IMG/VR virus record: IMGVR_UViG_3300042560_001323
Span: 179,167-243,166 of that record
Reading direction: 5' to 3' (one strand)
DNA: 64,000 nucleotides
The position numbers and the translations under genes are program-made. The notes beneath the pieces were generated by a model. It was not told where the DNA came from, made no database searches, and worked only from the letters and a program-made list of their open reading frames with translations. This document shows, piece after piece, positions 3,245 to 48,710 of this stretch (positions are counted from its first letter, which is position 1; each line of letters starts with the position of its first letter).

Positions 3245-6200
3245 TTAGATTTCCCCGCCCTTAGGCATTTTGGGTTCTTTGGGTTTAATATCCGGTTCTA
3301 CGGGAACTTTACCAGATTGACCTTTTATGTTGTTACCCGCGCTAGAGGCTGCTGTGGGGCTCTGTGGGGTGGCTGCAGTGCCTTCTGGTGGGACCATACC
3401 CACTTCTATGGGTAAACCAGTTCGTGGGTCAACTGGTGCATTTGGGTCGGGAATAATACCGTCTTCAATCTCCTTTGCCATAATTTCATCTTGCTCAATA
3501 ATCTCCTCATCAGTCTGACGAAGAATCTTGCGGCGCAAATAATCTTGTGAGAAATATCTTCCAACATAAGGCTCTGCCATAGATGCCATATTGAGCCTTT
3601 CGGTGAAGAGTTCAGATTCCTTAAGTTCAGCAAAGTGATTATCATATAGAAAGTCAAACTGAATATGTTCAGCCATTTTTTTCCAGTCTTCTGGCGTTAC
3701 GATATTCTTCAGTAAAAGTTGGGTTCTTAGGAGATCAATAAAAAGTTGAGAGAAGCGTTTGCGGAGTCTTCCCACAAATTTTGTGAACTTAACTTCATCT
3801 CTGAGGATTTCAGTTGAACGGCCAAGGTTAAATCCACTATCTCCGCCGATGCGAGTCTCTGGCACATTTAGTGCCTTATATAGATTACGTTTGAAGTAAT
3901 CTAAATCGGACAATTCGCCAAGACTGCTATTTTTAGTATAAATGCCACAGGAAAGAGCAAAGGTGTGATAGTTATGAATAGACTCGTCTGAATCAATAGT
4001 TAATGTTCCAACTTCAATTTCATCAGTTAGATATTCAATATTTGTAATAGTATGGTTATAAAATTTAGTTTCCATTCTAAAATGATGCCAGTTTTTGTAA
4101 CCAAAATCTTTAACCATATTCCTAACAATATTTACTGTAAACCCATTGGAGACGTTTACATTTGGGATAGACTTGTTAGCATTAAGTTCGCTGAAAAGAT
4201 TCCGCATTGAAATATTTTCATTGAGCATATTGCATACGTCAATTGCCTTAACTTGATGTGTGGTTTTTCCAATAACTATATTTTTTACGAACTCGAAATG
4301 TGAACGGGAAACTGCAACTTTTTGTCGCTCTTGATGATTCTCTTTATATTGTCTTGCATAAACTGGGTCACTAAAGCGCATCTGCGAAGACTCTCTACTT
4401 CTGTTTGCAGCTTCTTCCTTCATTTCTTCAGTCCAACTATTTCGTATTTGTTGTCTGAACCATTCATTGTAATCTGGGTCTTTTAATTTCTCCTGAAGGG
4501 ATTCTGATGCACCCTCAAGATTTTTTATAGAGGTTTCAATCTTCTTCTCTTTTTCATCCTCTGTGAGATTTTTAAAATGATTAATCTGACTGTTTTTTAT
4601 GTTTAAACACCATTCTTCTCGTTTTTCGGGAGTAATTGTTTCCCAGGTTCTTTTTCTTGCTTCAGAAGCCCGCTTCTTATATTCAAGGTAGAGTTCTGGA
4701 TTAGTTTCTTTTAAGGATTCAAGAAACAGTTTCTTGATTTTATTGATTTCTTTTGAATGATAATGAATATGGTCAAAATGACCCATAAAGCATAGATTAT
4801 CTGGGTTATTATTAAAACGGTTTAAATCAATGTGATGAATGGTTTGTTTTGGTTCATTTTTGTCCTCATAGATGAAATCATTACAGTAAGAGCCTTTACA
4901 GCGATTTGCAATTAATCTATGGGTGAATTTCCAAGTTTTATCAACATTATCATAAATCATTTCATAATCTGAAGAACTCTTGCTGATTTTTTCCTTCTTC
5001 CTATGAAGAGGGATCATACTTTGTCCTACAGTCAAATCCTTTGCCTCAACAAAACCCAGGTCATAAATTGGGAACTTGTGGTCGTAAGTGCATACAAAGC
5101 TCTCATCGTTATCAAGAGTAATCTTTATAACCTTTGCACTCTTTTGTGTTACTCCGGCCCAAGAAATCAAACCCGGCGCAAACTCACCAGTTGAAGGATG
5201 ACAAGAGTAAGTCCAAAGTTGCTCACCATTTTTCATTTCGGACTCAATCTCTGAAATTGTCAATTCTCTTCCATCTAGTAGAGACACTTTTGTATCCATT
5301 GATAGACAGCCCGCCGGTAAGGTGGTAACCTCAGTTCCGCGACCACCTTCTCTACGGGGGAACCAAAAGTCTTCCATAAGACTCATAAACTTACGAGAAG
5401 TATCTACCTCACCGGTAAGGCTATTGTAGTTCATCTTATTACGATACTTCATCATCTGCTCACGAAGGAACTGCTCAGCCTTGGGTTTTGGTAGATTACC
5501 TACGTCAATATAGAAAATTCTTTTTTCTGAACTTCTACTGAGACGATAAATGACTACACTATCTTCAATCATTCTAAGTTGATTGAGAACTTTGATTGCT
5601 TTATTAAGATATGAAAGGGATGTCCCCTTATTTCTATCAACCAAGCCCGAGGTACAATATGCGATGGATTCTTTTGTAAATTTGATTCCCTTTTCCGCAC
5701 CAGCGGTCATACCTGCTGCACCTACTGGATATGTTTGTTTGGGACTATAAACAAAATATTCCTCAAGTTCTGGGAAAACTTGTTCATTTGGCCCTTGATC
5801 TCCATACATTTTTGGACCAAGAATATCTTTCTTTTGCTTTTTCGCTTGACGAACATAGCGAATTTTCATTGCATCCACATACCGAATATCTTGAATTCCA
5901 GCGTGTGGGTCTTTAATGTCAATTAGTTTATGATAATAAAGCCGCCCATCAATATACCAGTTCCTAAAAATTTCGTGAGACTTTTTATCAAAATCGAGCA
6001 TTTCAAGAATTGCTTTAAATTCCTGACGAATCGCATTTTTAATTCCATCACTTGCATTAAGATTAGAAAGTTCAATCTCAATTGGAGAATCGTTTGTATC
6101 CGATACAATTGCCTCGTTTACAATATCTTCAATGGCGCTATCAACTTCGTGATGAAGCGCCATTTCCCGATAACGTTTGATTAAATCAAACTCTGTTCTA

Positions 6201-6352
6201 TAAACACCTTCAACATCAACATAAGAACCAAAAAAGCCGGTTGTCAAATAATGATCGGAACCATCATCATTATTAGGGGGGACCGGCGAAATTATATTTT
6301 TAGATAATTTTTTATCGTTATCTTCAATAGAAAATCCAAATAATCTAGCCAT
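3245..6352 (-). CDS. gp20: Portal vertex protein gp20 containing an intein
   Basis: MARLFGFSI, YREMALHHEVDSAIEDIVNEA, RIFYIDVGNLPK, EDFWFPRREGGRGTEVTTLP motifs; 1035 aa = about 575 aa extein + 460 aa insert. Confidence 0.97.
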   Translation of the reverse strand: MARLFGFSIEDNDKKLSKNIISPVPPNNDDGSDHYLTTGFFGSYVDVEGVYRTEFDLIKRYREMALHHEVDSAIEDIVNEAIVSDTNDSPIEIELSNLNASDGIKNAIRQEFKAILEMLDFDKKSHEIFRNWYIDGRLYYHKLIDIKDPHAGIQDIRYVDAMKIRYVRQAKKQKKDILGPKMYGDQGPNEQVFPELEEYFVYSPKQTYPVGAAGMTAGAEKGIKFTKESIAYCTSGLVDRNKGTSLSYLNKAIKVLNQLRMIEDSVVIYRLSRSSEKRIFYIDVGNLPKPKAEQFLREQMMKYRNKMNYNSLTGEVDTSRKFMSLMEDFWFPRREGGRGTEVTTLPAGCLSMDTKVSLLDGRELTISEIESEMKNGEQLWTYSCHPSTGEFAPGLISWAGVTQKSAKVIKITLDNDESFVCTYDHKFPIYDLGFVEAKDLTVGQSMIPLHRKKEKISKSSSDYEMIYDNVDKTWKFTHRLIANRCKGSYCNDFIYEDKNEPKQTIHHIDLNRFNNNPDNLCFMGHFDHIHYHSKEINKIKKLFLESLKETNPELYLEYKKRASEARKRTWETITPEKREEWCLNIKNSQINHFKNLTEDEKEKKIETSIKNLEGASESLQEKLKDPDYNEWFRQQIRNSWTEEMKEEAANRSRESSQMRFSDPVYARQYKENHQERQKVAVSRSHFEFVKNIVIGKTTHQVKAIDVCNMLNENISMRNLFSELNANKSIPNVNVSNGFTVNIVRNMVKDFGYKNWHHFRMETKFYNHTITNIEYLTDEIEVGTLTIDSDESIHNYHTFALSCGIYTKNSSLGELSDLDYFKRNLYKALNVPETRIGGDSGFNLGRSTEILRDEVKFTKFVGRLRKRFSQLFIDLLRTQLLLKNIVTPEDWKKMAEHIQFDFLYDNHFAELKESELFTERLNMASMAEPYVGRYFSQDYLRRKILRQTDEEIIEQDEIMAKEIEDGIIPDPNAPVDPRTGLPIEVGMVPPEGTAATPQSPTAASSAGNNIKGQSGKVPVEPDIKPKEPKMPKGGEI
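3929..5308 (-). mobile_element. Intein in gp20 (aa 349-808) with HNH endonuclease domain
   Basis: Starts CLSMDTKVSLLDG, block B FVCTYDHKF, ends HNYHTFALSCGIYTKN followed by Ser +1; internal TIHHIDLNRFNNNPDNL HNH motif; removal gives TLPAG-SSLGELSD matching gp20 TLPGGQNLGEL. Confidence 0.92.
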
Positions 6353-9279: not shown

Positions 9280-11046
9280 TTAATAATTGTAATTCCAGAA
9301 ATAAGAATAGTCGTCATCTGCTGTGTGCCAAAGATTACCCTCGCTGTCTCTCTCTGCTTCCAGATAATTATCATATAATTCTGCAATTTCATTTGGGAGG
9401 GAATCTGCTGAAGATACAAATCCAAATGGAGTTGAATCATTTTCTTCTAGTTCTTTTTCGTGCTCTTCTCTTAGTTTTTTGCGGATATCGGTTTCAGTCA
9501 TTTCTTTGAAATATTCCTGAGTGCTTATCCAAGCAAATAATACAAGGCAGATTGTCAGGTCATCATTTTTACCTTCTTCTGCACTAAAACTATTATAACG
9601 AGAAACAAATGTTGTAAGTTCTCCAATAATATCCCTATCGTTAAAAATAAGTTTATCTTCTTCAATAAATGTCTTTAAGTTTAAGCAACCAGTTCTTTTT
9701 ACTGGTTTAGACATCTTAATGCCATATTTAACACCCTTACCTGCTAAATTTTGACCTGCGACTTGTCCACCTCTACCCAAAGTTTTAGTTTGAATAACAT
9801 TAGGGTAACCATATTCAGTGTGAAGAATATATGCAACCTGGGAATCATTATTCACCTCACATAAAATAAATGCATCATTATATGCACGTCCAACTGGTTC
9901 AATAACATCTGGATATCTTAAACTTGGAATATCGTTGTTTCTATATTTTGCAACTACTCTATACGGAATCTGCGTCGTGTCAAATACAACAAATGCGGAA
10001 TAATCTAATTCAACACCTTCAGCAACGTCTACGGTAATAACATAGATTTTACCTGGCATTGGTTCTTCATAAACGTCAAGAAGGTCTTGGGTTCTTATTG
10101 GCGCTTCAACTACTAAATTGGAAAGTTTAGAACCGCTAATAAGGGTATCAGATGAGCCTAAAAATTCACACTCATATTCAGCATCCCAACGGGACTGTCC
10201 AATATTGGCAATAGTCTCTTCTTTAAAGGCAACATCATACTTATCTTGCCAATAAACGCGCATAGGAACATACTTGTTTATTCGCTTCAGTGCATCATCC
10301 CACAGCTTATAGTAGTGGTTCATACCCGCCGGGGTTGAAACGATAATAACTTTAGATTCTTTACCGGAAGTAATAGTCGGATATACCGAACTCATAAATT
10401 CATCGGCAACTTGGTGAGGGACGAAAGCAAATTCGTCAAGAAAAATAATATTGTATGAGCCACCTCTGACTGATGATGCCGAAGTTGATGCGGAAAAGAT
10501 TTTAGAACCATTTTCTATTTCTAATGATGCCTTATTCCAAGAGATAACTCCCTGTTGAAGCCACTTTGGAAGATTTTCGTATCCCCTCTGTAATCTGCTA
10601 AGAAGTTCCTTTGCGGTGCTTGCCTTGTTTGCTAGAACTGCAATATTTACGTTATCATTAAAAATAGCATAATGTAGTAGAAATGCCACCACTGCGGTTG
10701 AATTATGTGAGACAATATTATTAGTATAATAAATATTTCCATTTTCAACATCAATCAAGTCATACATATTCGACTTAACAGATGTTCTTTCTACAGATAA
10801 TATTTTTTCTAAACCTTCTTTTGTTTGTATTAAATCTCCAACCTTTAAATTTTTACAATAAATTTCATTCCAATTTTCGTCATATAGTATATGATTATCC
10901 GCACAAACTAGGGATGTTTCGTTTTCTGTTACTAAAATCCATTCCTCATATTCTATAGTTTTCCCTATTCCTGAAAAAGATTGCCACCCAGATGGCGTTT
11001 CAACTTCCCATTCATCTGTTAATAGTTCTTCTATAAATTTAGCCAT
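9280..11046 (-). CDS. gp17: Terminase large subunit gp17, C-terminal part fused to split-intein IntC (first 115 aa)
   Basis: aa 1-115 end YYTNNIVSHN then STAVVAFLLH; Walker B IIFLDEFAFV, IIVSTPAGMNH, nuclease ITVDVAEG and DDLTICL. Confidence 0.95.
   Translation of the reverse strand: MAKFIEELLTDEWEVETPSGWQSFSGIGKTIEYEEWILVTENETSLVCADNHILYDENWNEIYCKNLKVGDLIQTKEGLEKILSVERTSVKSNMYDLIDVENGNIYYTNNIVSHNSTAVVAFLLHYAIFNDNVNIAVLANKASTAKELLSRLQRGYENLPKWLQQGVISWNKASLEIENGSKIFSASTSASSVRGGSYNIIFLDEFAFVPHQVADEFMSSVYPTITSGKESKVIIVSTPAGMNHYYKLWDDALKRINKYVPMRVYWQDKYDVAFKEETIANIGQSRWDAEYECEFLGSSDTLISGSKLSNLVVEAPIRTQDLLDVYEEPMPGKIYVITVDVAEGVELDYSAFVVFDTTQIPYRVVAKYRNNDIPSLRYPDVIEPVGRAYNDAFILCEVNNDSQVAYILHTEYGYPNVIQTKTLGRGGQVAGQNLAGKGVKYGIKMSKPVKRTGCLNLKTFIEEDKLIFNDRDIIGELTTFVSRYNSFSAEEGKNDDLTICLVLFAWISTQEYFKEMTETDIRKKLREEHEKELEENDSTPFGFVSSADSLPNEIAELYDNYLEAERDSEGNLWHTADDDYSYFWNYNY
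10702..11046 (-). mobile_element. C-terminal half (IntC, 115 aa) of atypically split TerL intein
   Basis: EVETPSGWQSFSGI...CADNH...LKVGD...MYDLIDV...YYTNNIVSHN|S resembles AceL/GOS-TerL and Cat IntC sequences. Confidence 0.9.
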
Positions 11047-11110
11047 TTAAAAACTCTAAGCAAGTGTTCACGATAAAATTTGGACTTTTTCTATATTCTT
11101 CTTCTTTTAT
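11039..11110 (-). pseudogene. Putative C-terminal remnant of a Vsr-like/EDxHD free-standing homing endonuclease (IKEEEYRKSPNFIVNTCLEFLNG*)
   Basis: Manual translation; resembles the C-terminal helix of Vsr-like phage endonucleases; overlaps IntC start (AATGGCTAA). Confidence 0.45.
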
Positions 11111-11290
11111 AGTAACAAAAACCAATAAAATTCAAAAACTCTATTGGGTTTCTAGACGCTTCATAGCAGATGCTAAATGATGTGAATCACCATTTAGTCT
11201 TAATTCCGCTCCACGCCAGTAATCGACGTACTCCGCCGATGAAATTTCTTTATCGGTTAGATTCCTCCAACCTTCCTTTAAAATATTAAT
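11110..11290 (-). ncRNA. Predicted omegaRNA/reRNA scaffold overlapping tnpB 3' end and right end (approximate limits)
   Basis: Known TnpB architecture; this segment is conserved in copy 2 and its distal part survives in the deleted copy at 20.9 kb. Confidence 0.5.
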
Positions 11291-12337
11291 AGAGGCATTC
11301 AAATCTCTATCGTGCTGACAACCACAAGAAAGACAAGTCCATTCCCTAACCGAAAGCTGCATCTTGTCTTCTTTATGACCACAGTTAGAACAAGTCTTAC
11401 TGGAAGGAAAGAATCGGTTAATTTTAACCAGGACTTTACCATACCAGTTGCACTTGTATTCCAACATAGAAACAAAAGTAGACCACGCCGCATCGCTAAT
11501 AGACTTCGCTAATTTATGGTTCTTCCGCATTCCAGAAACGTTCAAGTTTTCAAGAACTATCAAGTCAAAAGTGTTCACTAAAGCAGTAGACACATTATGA
11601 AGAAAGTAAGTTCTTGAATTAGTAATGAAATCGTGTACTTTAGCAACTTTAATTCGTTGCTTAATGTAGCGGTTACTACCTTTAGTTTTACGACTTAAAT
11701 GTTTCTGGGCTTTTTTTAGTTTCGCTTGGTTCTTGCGAAACCATTTAGGATTGTTAATGACTTGACCATTACTTAAAACCATCAGGTCTTTAATGCCCAA
11801 ATCAATACCTACTACCTTGCCGGTTGAGGGTATTGGATTGAGTTCTTGTTTTACCAGGATAGAAACAAAATACTTTCCTGTTGGTGTTTTAGAAACCGTG
11901 ATGATCCTGAAATCTGCATCCTCCGGGATTTCACGGTCAATAACAACTTTAATCCAACCAATTTTCTCAAGTCTTACCAGACCGTTTTCTTGGTCTAAAA
12001 CGAACTTTTGATTGGGTAATCTAAAAGACTGCCGATTAGATTTTTTCTTAAAAGAAGGTCTACCTAGTTTGATTTTACGTTTTTTATTGAAAAACTGTTT
12101 CTCAAATTCAATAAAGTCATTTCTTTTCTGTTGAAGGGTAGCGGCAGAAACTTCTTTAAGAAACTCAAATTCAGGAGTGTCTTTTAATGTCTTTTCTGTA
12201 ACTACTTCTTTTGTCTGACTATTGAAGTTCTCAACAAGTTTATTCCAAACAAACCTGCAACAGCCGAAAGTTTTCGCTAATATAACTTCTTGTTCTTTAT
12301 CTGGATAAATCCGAAACTTGTATGCTTTTAAGTGCAT
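11141..12337 (-). CDS. tnpB: RNA-guided endonuclease TnpB, copy 1
   Basis: KAYKFRIYP HTH start; RuvC VGIDLG, VLENL, DRDLNASINI all intact; CxxC...CxxC zinc finger. Confidence 0.95.
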   Translation of the reverse strand: MHLKAYKFRIYPDKEQEVILAKTFGCCRFVWNKLVENFNSQTKEVVTEKTLKDTPEFEFLKEVSAATLQQKRNDFIEFEKQFFNKKRKIKLGRPSFKKKSNRQSFRLPNQKFVLDQENGLVRLEKIGWIKVVIDREIPEDADFRIITVSKTPTGKYFVSILVKQELNPIPSTGKVVGIDLGIKDLMVLSNGQVINNPKWFRKNQAKLKKAQKHLSRKTKGSNRYIKQRIKVAKVHDFITNSRTYFLHNVSTALVNTFDLIVLENLNVSGMRKNHKLAKSISDAAWSTFVSMLEYKCNWYGKVLVKINRFFPSSKTCSNCGHKEDKMQLSVREWTCLSCGCQHDRDLNASINILKEGWRNLTDKEISSAEYVDYWRGAELRLNGDSHHLASAMKRLETQ

Positions 12338-12361
12338 TTGCTCTTTGGTTAGTCGTAATAC

Positions 12362-12369
12362 TATTTATA
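12362..12369 (-). promoter_or_regulatory. T4-type late promoter TATAAATA upstream of tnpB copy 1
   Basis: Exact consensus about 25 nt before ATG; copy 2 has CTAAATA at the equivalent position. Confidence 0.65.
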
Positions 12370-12477
12370 AAACTTAATAGTTTAAGAGGAGGAATAAATC
12401 CTCCTCAACCTGAAAAGCACGACCAACCCAGGCATCTTTATTTAGTGAAGTTTCATTTCACTTTCTCAAACTTTTTC

Positions 12478-12576
12478 TTAAGACTCGGTTTGAACGTGAA
12501 TTGAAAGAGCTTGACCACTCTTAAATTCTTTCCCACAATCAAGACACTTCGGAATCTTTCTCTCTAATTTTGCCAT
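12478..12576 (-). pseudogene. Truncated ORF with C2H2-like zinc finger start (MAKLERKIPKCLDCGKEFKSGQALSIHVQTES*), probable N-terminal remnant of homing endonuclease
   Basis: Manual translation; overlaps the end of IntN in another frame; C-x2-C-x3-F-x5-L-x2-H pattern. Confidence 0.5.
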
Positions 12577-12913
12577 AAAATTCACCCACAGTTATTTCAA
12601 GTATTTCGCCAGTTTTTTTATTTCTGACTCTTACAATTGTATTTATGTCAAAACACTTTCCAACTTGTCTAGGACATAAGACAATATTAAATCTATTTTC
12701 CTGGAACGAAGTCAACATCCTTTCTTGAAAAGGATACATATTAAAATTCTGTAACCCGTGATCGAGGGTTACAATTTTCATATATTTTTTAGAAAAATAA
12801 ACAGAATCTTCGGAACATTTGGCTAGTTCCAAGATTTGCTCTTCTGTCAAATCGACTTTAGTATTCGCTTTTTTTAGAAGCGGATTACCAAGATAGTGCT
12901 GTTCGGGCATCAA
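12539..12913 (-). CDS. gp17: Terminase large subunit gp17, N-terminal 86 aa fused to 38-aa split-intein IntN
   Basis: HYLGNPLLKKAN...MYPFQ...NRFNIVLCPRQVGK then CFDINTIVRVRNKKTGEILEITVGEFY (IntN at 12542-12655). Confidence 0.93.
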   Translation of the reverse strand: MMPEQHYLGNPLLKKANTKVDLTEEQILELAKCSEDSVYFSKKYMKIVTLDHGLQNFNMYPFQERMLTSFQENRFNIVLCPRQVGKCFDINTIVRVRNKKTGEILEITVGEFYGKIREKDSEVS

Positions 12914-20905: not shown

Positions 20906-20931
20906 CTATCTTATTATTCTAACGAACTATT

Positions 20932-21038
20932 TAGTAACAAAAACCAATAAAAATAAAACTCTATTGATTTTCTAGACGCTTCATAGAAGATGCTAAGTGG
21001 TGAAAGTCAATATTTTAAGAGAAATAATAAATCCTCTT
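20932..21038 (-). mobile_element. Internally deleted (MITE-like) derivative of the TnpB element
   Basis: GAGGATTTATT..CTCTTAAA.TATT (upstream leader piece) fused to CACCACTTAGCATCTTCTATGAAGCGTCTAGAAAATCAATAGAG...TTTTATTGGTTTTTGTTACTA (tnpB 3' end + right end). Confidence 0.8.
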
Positions 21039-41571: not shown

Positions 41572-41605
41572 CAAAAATCGTTATACGCCAACTATTTCCT
41601 TATAA

Positions 41606-42943
41606 TAGTAACAAAAACCAATAAAAGTAAACCTCTATTGATTTCCTAAACGCTTCACAGCAGATGCTAAAGGGTGAAAATCACCGCTCAGTCTTAATTC
41701 CGCTCCACGCCAGTAATCGACGTACTCCGCCGATGAAAGTTCTTTATCGGTTAGGCTGCGCCAACCTTCCTTTAAAATATTAATAGAGGCATTCAAGTCT
41801 CTATCGTGTTTTGAACCGCAAGACGGACAAGTCCATTCCCGAATTTTTAAAGGCATCTTGTCTTCCTTATGTCCACAAGAACTACAAGTCTTACTGGAAG
41901 GAAAGAATCGGTTAATTTTAACCAGGACTTTGCCATACCAATCACACTTATACTCTAACATAGTAACAAAAGTAGACCAAGAGGCATCCGAGATTGATTT
42001 GGACAACTTGTGATTCTTCAACATCCCAGAAACATTCAAGTCTTCAACCGAAATTACATCAAAAGTTCTAACCAGAGCTGTTGAGATGTTATGGAGAAAG
42101 TAAGTTCTGGAATTGGTAATGTATTCGTGTATTCTAGCAACTTTAATACGTTGCTTAATGTAACGATTACTGCCTTTAGTCTTGCGACTTAAATGCTTCT
42201 GGGCTCTTTTGAGTTTCGCTTGGTTCTTGCGAAACCATTTAGGATTGTTAATGGCTTGACCGTTTGAAAGAATGAACAAGTCTTTAATACCCAAATCAAT
42301 ACCTACTACCTTGCCGGTAGAGGGTATTGGATTGAGTTCTTGCTTAACCAGAATAGAAACGAAGTATTTACCGGTTGGAGTTTTAGAAACCGTGATGATC
42401 CTGAAATCTGCATCCTCCGGGATTTCACGGTCAATAACAACTTTAACCCAACCAATTTTCTCCAGTCTAACCACTGAATTTTCTTGGTCTAACTTGAACT
42501 TTTGATTGGGAAGTCTAAAAGACTGACGATTTGATTTCTTCTTAAAAGAAGGCCGTCCTAATTTGGCCTTTCTTTTCTTATTGAAAAACTGTTTCTTGAA
42601 CTCAATAAAGTCATTTCTTTTTTGTTGAAGTGTAGAAGCTGAAACTTCTTTAAGAAACTCAAATTCTGGAGTGTCTTTTAATGTCTTTTCGTTAATAAAT
42701 TCCTTAGAGTTACTGTTGAAGTTTTCAACGAGTTTATTCCAAACAAACCTGCAACAACCGAAAGTCTTCGCCAGTAAAACTTCTTGCTCTTTATCTGGAT
42801 AAATCCTGAACTTGTATGCTTTTAAGTGCATCTGCTCTGATTATTGGTTGGCAATACTATTTAGTAAAGTTTTATTTTATAAGGGGAGAAGAAATTCTCC
42901 CCACCTGAAAAGCGCCAACCAACCAGGCATCTTTATTTAGTGA
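41606..42943 (-). mobile_element. TnpB-only element, copy 2 (about 1.34 kb)
   Basis: Shares both end sequences with copy 1; no tnpA adjacent. Confidence 0.85.
41635..42831 (-). CDS. tnpB: RNA-guided endonuclease TnpB, copy 2
   Basis: Same length (398 aa) as copy 1, about 47 substitutions by hand count (about 88% identity); RuvC D/E/D intact. Confidence 0.95.
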   Translation of the reverse strand: MHLKAYKFRIYPDKEQEVLLAKTFGCCRFVWNKLVENFNSNSKEFINEKTLKDTPEFEFLKEVSASTLQQKRNDFIEFKKQFFNKKRKAKLGRPSFKKKSNRQSFRLPNQKFKLDQENSVVRLEKIGWVKVVIDREIPEDADFRIITVSKTPTGKYFVSILVKQELNPIPSTGKVVGIDLGIKDLFILSNGQAINNPKWFRKNQAKLKRAQKHLSRKTKGSNRYIKQRIKVARIHEYITNSRTYFLHNISTALVRTFDVISVEDLNVSGMLKNHKLSKSISDASWSTFVTMLEYKCDWYGKVLVKINRFFPSSKTCSSCGHKEDKMPLKIREWTCPSCGSKHDRDLNASINILKEGWRSLTDKELSSAEYVDYWRGAELRLSGDFHPLASAVKRLGNQ

Positions 42944-42968
42944 TGTTTTTACTGCCATTTTTTACTCC

Positions 42969-48086: not shown

Positions 48087-48562
48087 TCAACCAATAGTTG
48101 GGGCTTTTAGAGCAATTTCTTGAGTAGAAACTGCAGCCAAATCTACACTTGACCCATAAGTTTACCATTCTTATGGAGTGGACTATATCATCACCCTTTA
48201 AGGTGTCGGACGCTTATTCCTGTTATTAAGGGAACTATATCCCCCAGGTAGTCTCTGAAGTTTCCTTGAGTGTACTCAAGGCTCACCTGCTGATTGCCCA
48301 TGTTTTTGGGGGGGGGGGTTCCAGCAATTCACCCAGTTTCGTCAATACTCTTACGAGTAAGGGACACCGATTAAAACTTAATGTCCACGGGAGGTGCTGC
48401 AATAAATGCTAAAATAAAGCAAATAGTAGCAGCAAGTAAACAGGGAATCATAAGAACCGAAAAATGCCCAAGATAGAGGCGATTATTCGTACTTGTTACC
48501 CAATTAAGATAACGTTCCCAGAGGTTGTCGCCAGAACGGCGTGTAGCAATTGTAGCAGTCAT
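48087..48562 (-). pseudogene. psbA: psbA remnant: exon 1 (48381-48562, D1 residues 1-60) + group I intron + extreme C-terminal exon (48087-48145); central about 280 codons missing
   Basis: [53 protein letters not shown]; DLAAVSTQEIALKAPTIG* matches the D1 C-terminus. Confidence 0.9.
48146..48380 (-). mobile_element. ORF-less group I intron (235 nt)
   Basis: P AATTGCTGGAA, Q AATCAGCAG, R TTCAGAGACTA, S GATATAGTCC; IGS GTGTCC pairs with exon GGACAT (U-G at splice site); P9 hairpin; P9.0 AC/GT and terminal G at 48146. Confidence 0.88.
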
Positions 48563-48631
48563 ATTTGAAAATAGGGTAGAAAAAGTTCGTAGGGACGAAC
48601 GTGTTTATTATTTCTTCTCACCCCTAGAGAA

Positions 48632-48684
48632 GATATGAGAGACGTATTTGACGTGCAAAGTCTCGGTAAGCACGAGCAGCAATG
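48632..48684 (-). repeat. psbA leader motif (PhotoRC-II-like), copy 1 of a 53-bp direct repeat
   Basis: CATTGCTGCTCGTGCTTACCGAGACTTTGCACGTCAAATACGTCTCTCATATC; 1 mismatch to 49200-49252. Confidence 0.75.
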
Positions 48685-48710
48685 AAGTTTATGTTATTAT
48701 TTTGTAATAA

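Follow-up and report, generated by a model that had tools for sequence, protein, structure and literature searches.

A TnpB insertion sequence between the eroded ends of the endonuclease gene in a fractured phage terminase with a split intein

Fractured genes have been described in phages, including a gp17 terminase locus from Lake Gatun with a Vsr-like endonuclease (Dassa et al., 2009; PMC2677866). We analysed a 64-kb stretch of DNA, here called the window, which is the last 64 kb of the 243-kb genome in IMG/VR record 3300042560_001323, and found in it a fractured gene for the large terminase, terL, whose two halves are separated by an insertion sequence (IS) carrying tnpB. As in the described fractured genes, the break in an essential gene falls at a conserved motif and leaves two open reading frames (ORFs) on the same strand, each with one half of an intein. 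Such genes hold a free-standing nuclease gene between the halves, with the endonuclease ORF overlapping both neighbours, and the relatives of the present locus carry one of the Vsr-like type. Here, in contrast, the endonuclease is reduced to its two ends, and the intact nuclease of the gap is TnpB, which belongs to its own IS and lies outside the fractured-gene unit. The evidence points to an incidental event in a single lineage and not to a new kind of mobile unit. All terL and tnpB features are on the minus strand (Table 1), and L-numbers denote the loci that were compared.

Three further types of described element bear on this locus. The split intein GOS-TerL consists of an N-terminal half (IntN) of 37 and a C-terminal half (IntC) of 115 amino acids with Ser1 and Cys+1, and AceL-TerL of halves of 25 and 104 amino acids with Cys1 and Cys+1 (PMC11766414). 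With these two and with Cat (PDB 6DSL) the present intein shares a short IntN and a long IntC (38 and 115 amino acids), the Class-1 catalytic set, and an IntC homologous to CatC and VidaL; it differs in pairing Cys1 with Ser+1, and its IntC is a diverged homologue of CatC. The IS resembles ISDra2 and the IS200/IS605 family in the domains and catalytic residues of TnpB, in its subterminal hairpins, in a putative short target motif 5' of the left end, and in an ωRNA-like structure over the 3' end of tnpB and the right end. TnpB of that family takes its guide from the right-end flank, and the same is expected here (PMC8612924, PMC10055086). Unlike these elements, the copies of the present IS have no tnpA, were seen on viral contigs only, replace target DNA at their insertion sites, and include several old, diverged copies in one phage genome of lytic type. 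IStrons, finally, consist of IS607/IS605 TnpB elements placed inside group I introns (PMC10690162). The likeness lies in a TnpB element within a self-splicing element, so that insertion into an essential gene would be phenotypically silent; in IStrons, however, intron and IS share their ends and move together, whereas here splicing is at the protein level, with no sign of shared ends or of co-mobility.

We located the break in terL by aligning both pieces with T4 gp17. Residues 115-522 of the C-terminal piece align with gp17 residues 166-568 (3ezk, E 6e-65), and the N-terminal piece aligns as far as SRQLGK|TT, so that the break must fall inside the conserved Walker A motif (RQVGK|ST), between GK and ST. 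The ends of the two same-strand ORFs that face the break bear complementary intein halves with the catalytic residues Cys1, ADxH, SHN and Ser+1. Alignments with 9 and 13 relatives show no variation in Cys1, in A-D-x-H of block B, in M-Y-D or in the terminal S-H-N with the Ser/Thr after it, and the present intein has every one of these. IntC is matched by CatC, an engineered consensus of atypical TerL inteins (6dsl_B, E 4e-13), by VidaL (E 5e-7) and by gp41-1, and a search with IntN alone against the PDB gave no match. Judged by its sequence, the split intein is a new Cys1/Ser+1 member of the known GOS-TerL-like class with a short IntN. TerL is an essential phage protein, and this essentiality together with the residue conservation argues for trans-splicing of the two halves, which would restore Walker A RQVGK|ST in a TerL of 559 amino acids (86 + 473). 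One candidate observation was rejected: in tblastn, intein-free cyanophage TerLs covered IntC residues 62-115, probably by over-extension of the alignment, and the genes concerned encode ordinary proteins of 550-565 amino acids.

The origin of the gap between the halves is apparent from related loci. An IntC 37-69% identical to the present one is encoded on 30 further viral contigs, and L006 (74% over the whole of terL-C) is a thirty-first locus. Gap lengths were compared only at loci with both terL halves on the contig. The gap measures ~1 kb at eleven of these related loci, 1.2-1.5 kb at two, and 298, 88 or 60 nucleotides (nt) at L119/L120, L122/L139 and L136, respectively. The 1-kb gaps contain an ORF of 330-350 amino acids, beginning ...TCLDCG...H..H, with C2H2-like zinc fingers at its N-terminus and a DUF559/Vsr-like domain at its C-terminus, and the gene is intact in L116-L118, L121, L123-L128 and L130. 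On these domains, we assign the ORF to the Vsr-like (later EDxHD) homing endonuclease family of fractured genes. Deletion within the same gene gave rise to the short gaps; L119 retains the last 90 codons, and in L119, L122 and L136 the endonuclease decayed by deletion without any IS.

At the present locus, both ends of this endonuclease gene can still be recognised. The ORF of the 5' remnant overlaps the end of terL-N, as in the relatives, and has 32 codons before a premature stop (12480..12478); the rest is eroded, with ~40 codons of the 5' end recognisable, and the DNA down to 12450 aligns locally with nt 34-147 of the L121 endonuclease gene. A gene of 32 amino acids is also called at this place. 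The stop codon of the 3' remnant overlaps the start of terL-C exactly as in the relatives, and the 62 nt to the IntC ATG are likewise the same. No intact gene for a protein-guided homing endonuclease is thus kept between the terL halves: ~40 codons of the 5' end and ~22 of the 3' end remain, and ~830 nt of the interior are absent, with the IS in their place. Because the two eroded ends flank the IS in the right frames and with the right overlaps, the IS lies inside the endonuclease gene. Misassembly is excluded, since the order terL-N, tnpB, terL-C was found again in sample 3300059473 with proteins 100% identical, and the Logan assembly SRR27489776 is identical over 160/160 nt across the right-end junction of the IS. 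Both are the same phage again and say nothing on uniqueness. We consider it likely that a phage-resident IS overwrote the decayed endonuclease of a classical fractured terL, a neutral harbour from which homing would be possible only into IS-free copies of the same decayed allele. Intein and IS would then be co-located and not co-adapted.

Table 1. Coordinates of the fractured terL locus and of related features in the window.
Feature	Position	Strand	Description
terL-N gene	12913..12539	-	124 amino acids (aa) (123 from ATG at 12910); ORF call, PHROG terminase match
N-extein	12913/12910..12656	-	86 aa, end PRQVGK
IntN	12655..12542	-	38 aa, start CFDINT, Cys first; aligned with invariant Cys1
Endonuclease 5' remnant (Vsr-like/EDxHD)	12450..12576	-	ATG at 12576; C2H2-like zinc finger CLDCGKEF...H
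GAAAC, pentamer resembling the target-adjacent motif	12450..12454	-	directly 5' of IS left end; family consensus AAAAC
IS200/IS605-type tnpB-only IS	11109..12449	-	1,341 bp; ends placed where 14 copies stop being alike
IS left end	12449..12338	-	subterminal hairpin 12406..12386; DNA fold z = -3.9
tnpB	12337..11141	-	398 aa; same strand orientation as terL
Predicted ωRNA scaffold (core)	11109..11240	-	overlaps last ~33 tnpB codons and runs to right end; may start near 11329
IS right end	terminus 11109	-	finishes ...GTTACTAT; exact end motifs found in window
Predicted guide AAAAGAAGAAGAATATAGAA	11089..11108	-	first 20 nt past right end, inside endonuclease 3' remnant
Endonuclease 3' remnant	11039..11108	-	last ~22 codons, ending ...KEEEYRKSPNFIVNTCLEFLNG and stop; DNA alignment with 13 relatives
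terL-C gene	11046..9280	-	588 aa
IntC	11046..10702	-	115 aa, end ...IVSHN
C-extein	10701..9283	-	473 aa, start STAVV; rest of ATPase and nuclease domain
Second full IS copy (L094)	41605..42944	-	tnpB 42831..41635; 88% aa identity (tblastn), 85% nt identity
Solo right-end relic	20931..21005	-	~75 nt including last ωRNA stem, 19/20 match to right-end motif; intergenic, between two large genes

The limits of the IS were defined by comparison of 14 copies from ten viral contigs, which are alike from ...TTCACTAAATAAAG (12449 here) to ...TTATTGGTTTTTGTTACTAT (11109 here) and have unrelated flanks. Every copy has 112 nt between the left end and the tnpB ATG and 32 nt between the stop codon and the right end; there is therefore no room for tnpA, and the element is tnpB-only. 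TnpB matches three Pfam domains (HTH_OrfB_IS605, OrfB_IS605 and Cas12f1-like_TNB) and aligns with ISDra2 TnpB (E 1e-70), and an alignment to 9yyg shows the RuvC motifs DLG, E-x-LN and HDRD (D/E/D) and the CxxC zinc finger to be intact. The terminal stem of the right end occupies alignment columns 195-231, and subterminal hairpins are thus found at both ends of the IS. Over the predicted ωRNA, RNAalifold on 10 copies gave 65 consensus pairs, 7 of them with compensatory changes, and one hairpin has three covarying pairs; the single-sequence fold has z = -4.5, and synonymous divergence is lower over the last 42 tnpB codons (357-398) in most pairs of copies. An Rfam search of this region returned no family and chance-level matches only. 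The conserved 3' structure is consistent with an ωRNA scaffold of the kind that characterised TnpB systems have (PMC8612924, PMC10278001). A T4-type late promoter in the left end (TATAAATA, 12362-12369 on the minus strand, 25 nt upstream of the tnpB ATG) was considered and rejected: although TATAAATA is conserved in several IS copies, the motif is not enriched in the window, with 11 occurrences against 8.2 expected.

These results uphold the structural part of a preliminary description of the window made from the sequence alone. It had read gp17 as two genes, one ending in PRQVGK and a 38-residue IntN and the other starting with a 115-residue IntC that ends at SHN|STAVV, and both the coordinates and the gp17 alignments agree with this throughout; the alignments also return the geometry of its splice product (Walker A RQVGK|ST, 86 + 473 = 559 amino acids), splicing itself being predicted. 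Its assignment of the intein to the short-IntN AceL/GOS-TerL type stands on the 38/115 division and on the matches to CatC and VidaL. The tnpB that it called intact encodes 398 amino acids with RuvC D/E/D and zinc finger unbroken, and its view that an RNA-guided nuclease occupies the endonuclease slot holds in that an apparently functional TnpB element lies between two eroded endonuclease ends.

The genome contains at least four full copies of the IS (the copy in the terL slot, L084, L088 and L094), one truncated copy (L095) and one solo right end, the last of which indicates that copies decay by loss of tnpB. Copies within this genome differ from each other with a synonymous divergence (dS) of ~0.6-0.75; among the closer family members it is 0.58-0.89. 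The ratio of nonsynonymous to synonymous divergence (dN/dS) over codons 1-356 is 0.07-0.13 between copies in this genome and 0.06-0.13 between the tnpB of the terL slot and seven other copies. By these measures, the copies are old (dS 0.58-0.85) and under purifying selection (dN/dS ~0.1). Outside this genome, the IS lineage has so far been seen only on (T4-like) viral contigs. A pattern-based scan of 185,579 species genomes, which finds fairly close relatives only, returned no cellular relatives above 42% identity; a metagenome scan with TnpB gave two close relatives only, one of them the L100 contig again, and a search with the left-end pattern returned only copies already known. In three copies (L085, L087 and L093) the right end is ~19 nt shorter (AGTTTTTTACTAT) and the flanks are rearranged and partly repeat each other, and no clean empty site could be made out for them.

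The TnpB copy at terL could also be a dead passenger or a domesticated gene, for instance one for a regulator, without a role as a nuclease or in homing. Decay of copies does occur, as the truncated L095 and the solo right end (20931-21005) show, and the lack of TnpA and the off-consensus motif beside the left end would both fit such a fate. The ORF is nevertheless full-length with RuvC D/E/D and zinc finger intact, dN/dS is ~0.1 over 356 codons against every other copy, and the ωRNA scaffold is conserved with compensatory changes. Known nuclease-dead TnpB regulators have lost RuvC residues, which is not the case here. We therefore judge a dead or domesticated TnpB to be highly improbable.

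Most of the insertion sites are alike in their left flank. Directly 5' of the left end, (T)AAAAC is present at 9 of 11 independent sites, the other two reading GAAAC (the terL site) and TATTC (L089), and the conserved AAAAC is the probable target-adjacent motif (TAM). The only IS-less counterpart seen is that of copy 2 (41605-42944), at L292:504-1044. At copy 2, relatives are collinear on the left as far as the junction, where they have a native ...AAAAAC; collinearity resumes at the first base past the right end, and between these points the IS has replaced ~500 nt holding two small ORFs of 45 and 158 amino acids. The 20 nt that precede the right junction in L292 are similar to the right-end terminus of the IS; the corresponding bases of the terL locus are ..TTCTTCATAT versus ..TTGTTACTAT. 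The empty site and the TAM at terL are predicted, and an IS-free junction there would be expected to read ...GAAAC joined straight to AAAAGAAG.... For L084 and L088, empty sites were sought on viral contigs, and the gene next to the IS had no relatives there.

Several of these observations weigh against a plain history of insertion and homing. The local GAAAC deviates from the AAAAC consensus. At both sites with an uninterrupted counterpart, DNA has been replaced and not just interrupted (~830 nt at terL, ~500 nt at copy 2), which simple peel-and-paste insertion does not predict; insertion followed by deletion, or repair of a break by copying of the IS via short homologies, could account for it. 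An IS-free version of this exact allele was not found in an exact-pattern IMG/VR search, which with the right flank returned only this contig. Finally, TnpA (Y1) was not seen within any IS copy, the rest of the 243-kb genome not having been screened.

The replaced DNA raises the alternative that a resected break in the endonuclease gene was mended by copying the IS from another site or phage, so that the interior was lost in one step. The source of the break could have been the endonuclease system, an off-target cut by TnpB or replication, and short homologies, one on the TAM side and another on the side resembling the right end, would have served for the copying. Both copies inspected (2/2) do replace DNA exactly between a left (A)AAAC and a right sequence resembling the right-end terminus, and no copy contains tnpA. 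Moreover, divergence among the copies within the genome is as great as that between them and copies on other contigs, which fits import by recombination rather than intragenomic bursts. Two sites only were examined, however, the microhomologies are short and at terL weak (7/10), and a deletion before or after ordinary insertion gives the same picture, the endonucleases of L119, L122 and L136 having decayed with no IS at all. Repair of this kind is in our view unlikely.

If intein and IS formed one composite unit, as the preliminary description had proposed for a split-intein and TnpB invader spreading by RNA-guided homing, TnpB-ωRNA would cut intein-free or endonuclease-bearing terL in co-infecting phages, and repair would copy IntN-IS-IntC into them. 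TnpB does sit exactly in the endonuclease slot, co-oriented with terL, and homing by OMEGA systems (short for obligate mobile element-guided activity) into co-infecting phages has been proposed as a category, as non-restorative homing (PMC13565253). The guide search took in L003-L209 (terL, IntC, TerL-N and tnpB loci). At up to 3 mismatches, the predicted guide had its counterpart in six related loci only (L116-L120 and L126, 1-3 mismatches), each time at the homologous place in the endonuclease 3' end, 62 nt before the IntC ATG, the same distance as here, which speaks for such a unit. Of the alleles that the preliminary description had asked about, the endonuclease-bearing one is thus matched by the guide, and intein-free terL is not: there was no match at up to 3 mismatches in 80 intein-free or contiguous-intein terL loci, L004/L005 (~90% nt identity in the exteins) included. 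The idea that the guide would correspond to something in related terL loci survives in a technical sense only, as the match is to the endonuclease gene and not to terL. In the endonuclease-bearing alleles, the bases 5' of the match, at the TAM position, are CTTCATAT and not AAAAC. The guide and TAM results thus leave a single predicted target, an IS-free copy of the same decayed allele.

Recurrence is likewise lacking. We searched for other TerL split inteins with tnpB inside, as the preliminary description had suggested, and found tnpB between the terL halves at 0 of 30 related split-TerL loci and at 0 of ~96 other tnpB loci (IMG/VR and JGI metagenomes); the arrangement was seen in this phage only, an outcome that the preliminary description had named as speaking against its proposal. 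The IS is moreover multi-copy, with diverged copies and with unrelated flanks elsewhere. We give a composite unit very little credence. A separate claim, that TnpB functionally succeeded the decayed endonuclease, also seems to us very unlikely: the guide is a conserved part of the gene for that very endonuclease, and if the non-consensus TAM were tolerated, TnpB would cut endonuclease-bearing fractured terL in co-infecting phages, and repair would swap the endonuclease for the IS, giving the arrangement observed at this locus. Were this so, a protein-guided element would be giving way to an RNA-guided one in one and the same intein slot, the split intein being carried along by co-conversion, and a TnpA-less IS lineage would persist in lytic phages purely as an RNA-guided homing gene.

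Other members of the IS family lie near terL. In L100:1535-2895 (= L212), a member 81% identical stands ~100 nt upstream of the terL start, and in L100 itself ~470 nt are inserted into terL at Walker A; in L108, a member directly follows the DUF6321 gene, the gene that precedes terL in the window. Three of ~13 IS sites adjoin terL, which may be chance.

Under the overwriting of a decayed endonuclease by a resident IS, the reading that we favour, the locus would work as follows. Late in infection, the two TerL polypeptides would associate through the split intein and trans-splice to the 559-amino-acid TerL, as the conserved residues and the essentiality of TerL suggest. The gap once held a zinc-finger and Vsr-like/EDxHD endonuclease of ~340 amino acids, as homology with more than 10 related loci indicates, and the 1,341-bp IS now lies between its remnants, co-oriented with terL. 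The gap is a safe harbour because nothing in it is needed for TerL. A terminator scan found no intrinsic terminator between tnpB and terL-C, and for this reason terL-C may be reachable by read-through from the tnpB side. By analogy with characterised elements, TnpB and an ωRNA from the 3' end of its own transcript would form an RNA-guided nuclease, with the 16-20 nt past the right end as guide, and its cuts would be confined to DNA with a TAM (~AAAAC; here GAAAC) immediately next to the guide sequence. Targets would be IS-free copies of the decayed allele, such as one carried by a co-infecting sibling phage or one left by excision, and recombinational repair of the cut would copy the IS back, maintaining or spreading it among siblings. 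Cutting of IS-free copies followed by recombinational repair has been demonstrated for elements of the IS605 family (PMC10055086). A homing lifestyle would fit the several TnpA-less copies of this lytic-type genome, which are old, diverged and under purifying selection.

Related terL loci show further changes of their own. In L122:5764-6060, and also in L139, all that is left of the endonuclease is a zinc-finger remnant, which is in frame with IntN before it and IntC after it, and the split intein appears to have been re-fused into a single ORF. Some related terL genes (L130, L117, L118, L119, L135 and L138) have two or three IntC-like segments, the terminase of these loci being fractured or interrupted at several sites. 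The nearest TerL relatives (L004:4774-7440 and L005:182-2848; exteins 97% identical in amino acids, ~90% in nt) have a single TerL of 888 amino acids with a different, contiguous LAGLIDADG intein of 329 amino acids inserted likewise at GK|ST, so that sister phages have alternative inteins at a single site. The contiguous intein begins with Pro, not Cys/Ser, has a Cys in the block-F region, and may be class-3-like. No co-conversion gradient was seen in the extein identity to L004.

The terL neighbourhood is a T4-like structural module on the minus strand, with neck/gp15, small terminase, DUF6321 protein, terL, sheath, tube and portal. The closest TerLs in cultured phages, those of Synechococcus and Prochlorococcus myoviruses, are at most 56% identical, and megablast of the region against 50,697 GenBank phage records gave no match. 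A PhotoRC-II motif and a psbA start are present elsewhere in the window, and on these features and the TerL relatives we treat the phage as cyanomyovirus-like. At 48154-48687 on the minus strand, the PhotoRC-II motif is followed by a 63-codon ORF resembling, by eye, the N-terminus of psbA (D1), and by a group I intron (Rfam 66 bits). There is no long downstream exon among ORFs of at least 50 amino acids; psbA could be truncated, or an exon could have been overlooked. The T4-type portal protein (3245-6352 on the minus strand, 1,035 amino acids) has an insertion of ~430 amino acids (residues 356-786) that matches the Pfam intein-splicing domain and, on this match, is a second intein within the same structural module as that of terL.

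For the class of split inteins valued for protein labelling, this locus adds a natural GOS-TerL-like member with a short IntN and Cys1/Ser+1, together with ~30 relatives. Within one family, the loci display the life cycle of a fractured gene, with the endonuclease intact, truncated, deleted with the intein halves re-fused or, as here, overwritten. With a TnpB IS in its endonuclease slot, the locus varies the fractured-gene arrangement in a new way, and the present evidence shows no new intein-TnpB mobile unit. The tnpB-only IS lineage lends indirect support to the view that TnpB-ωRNA alone may sustain an element in phages by homing during co-infection.

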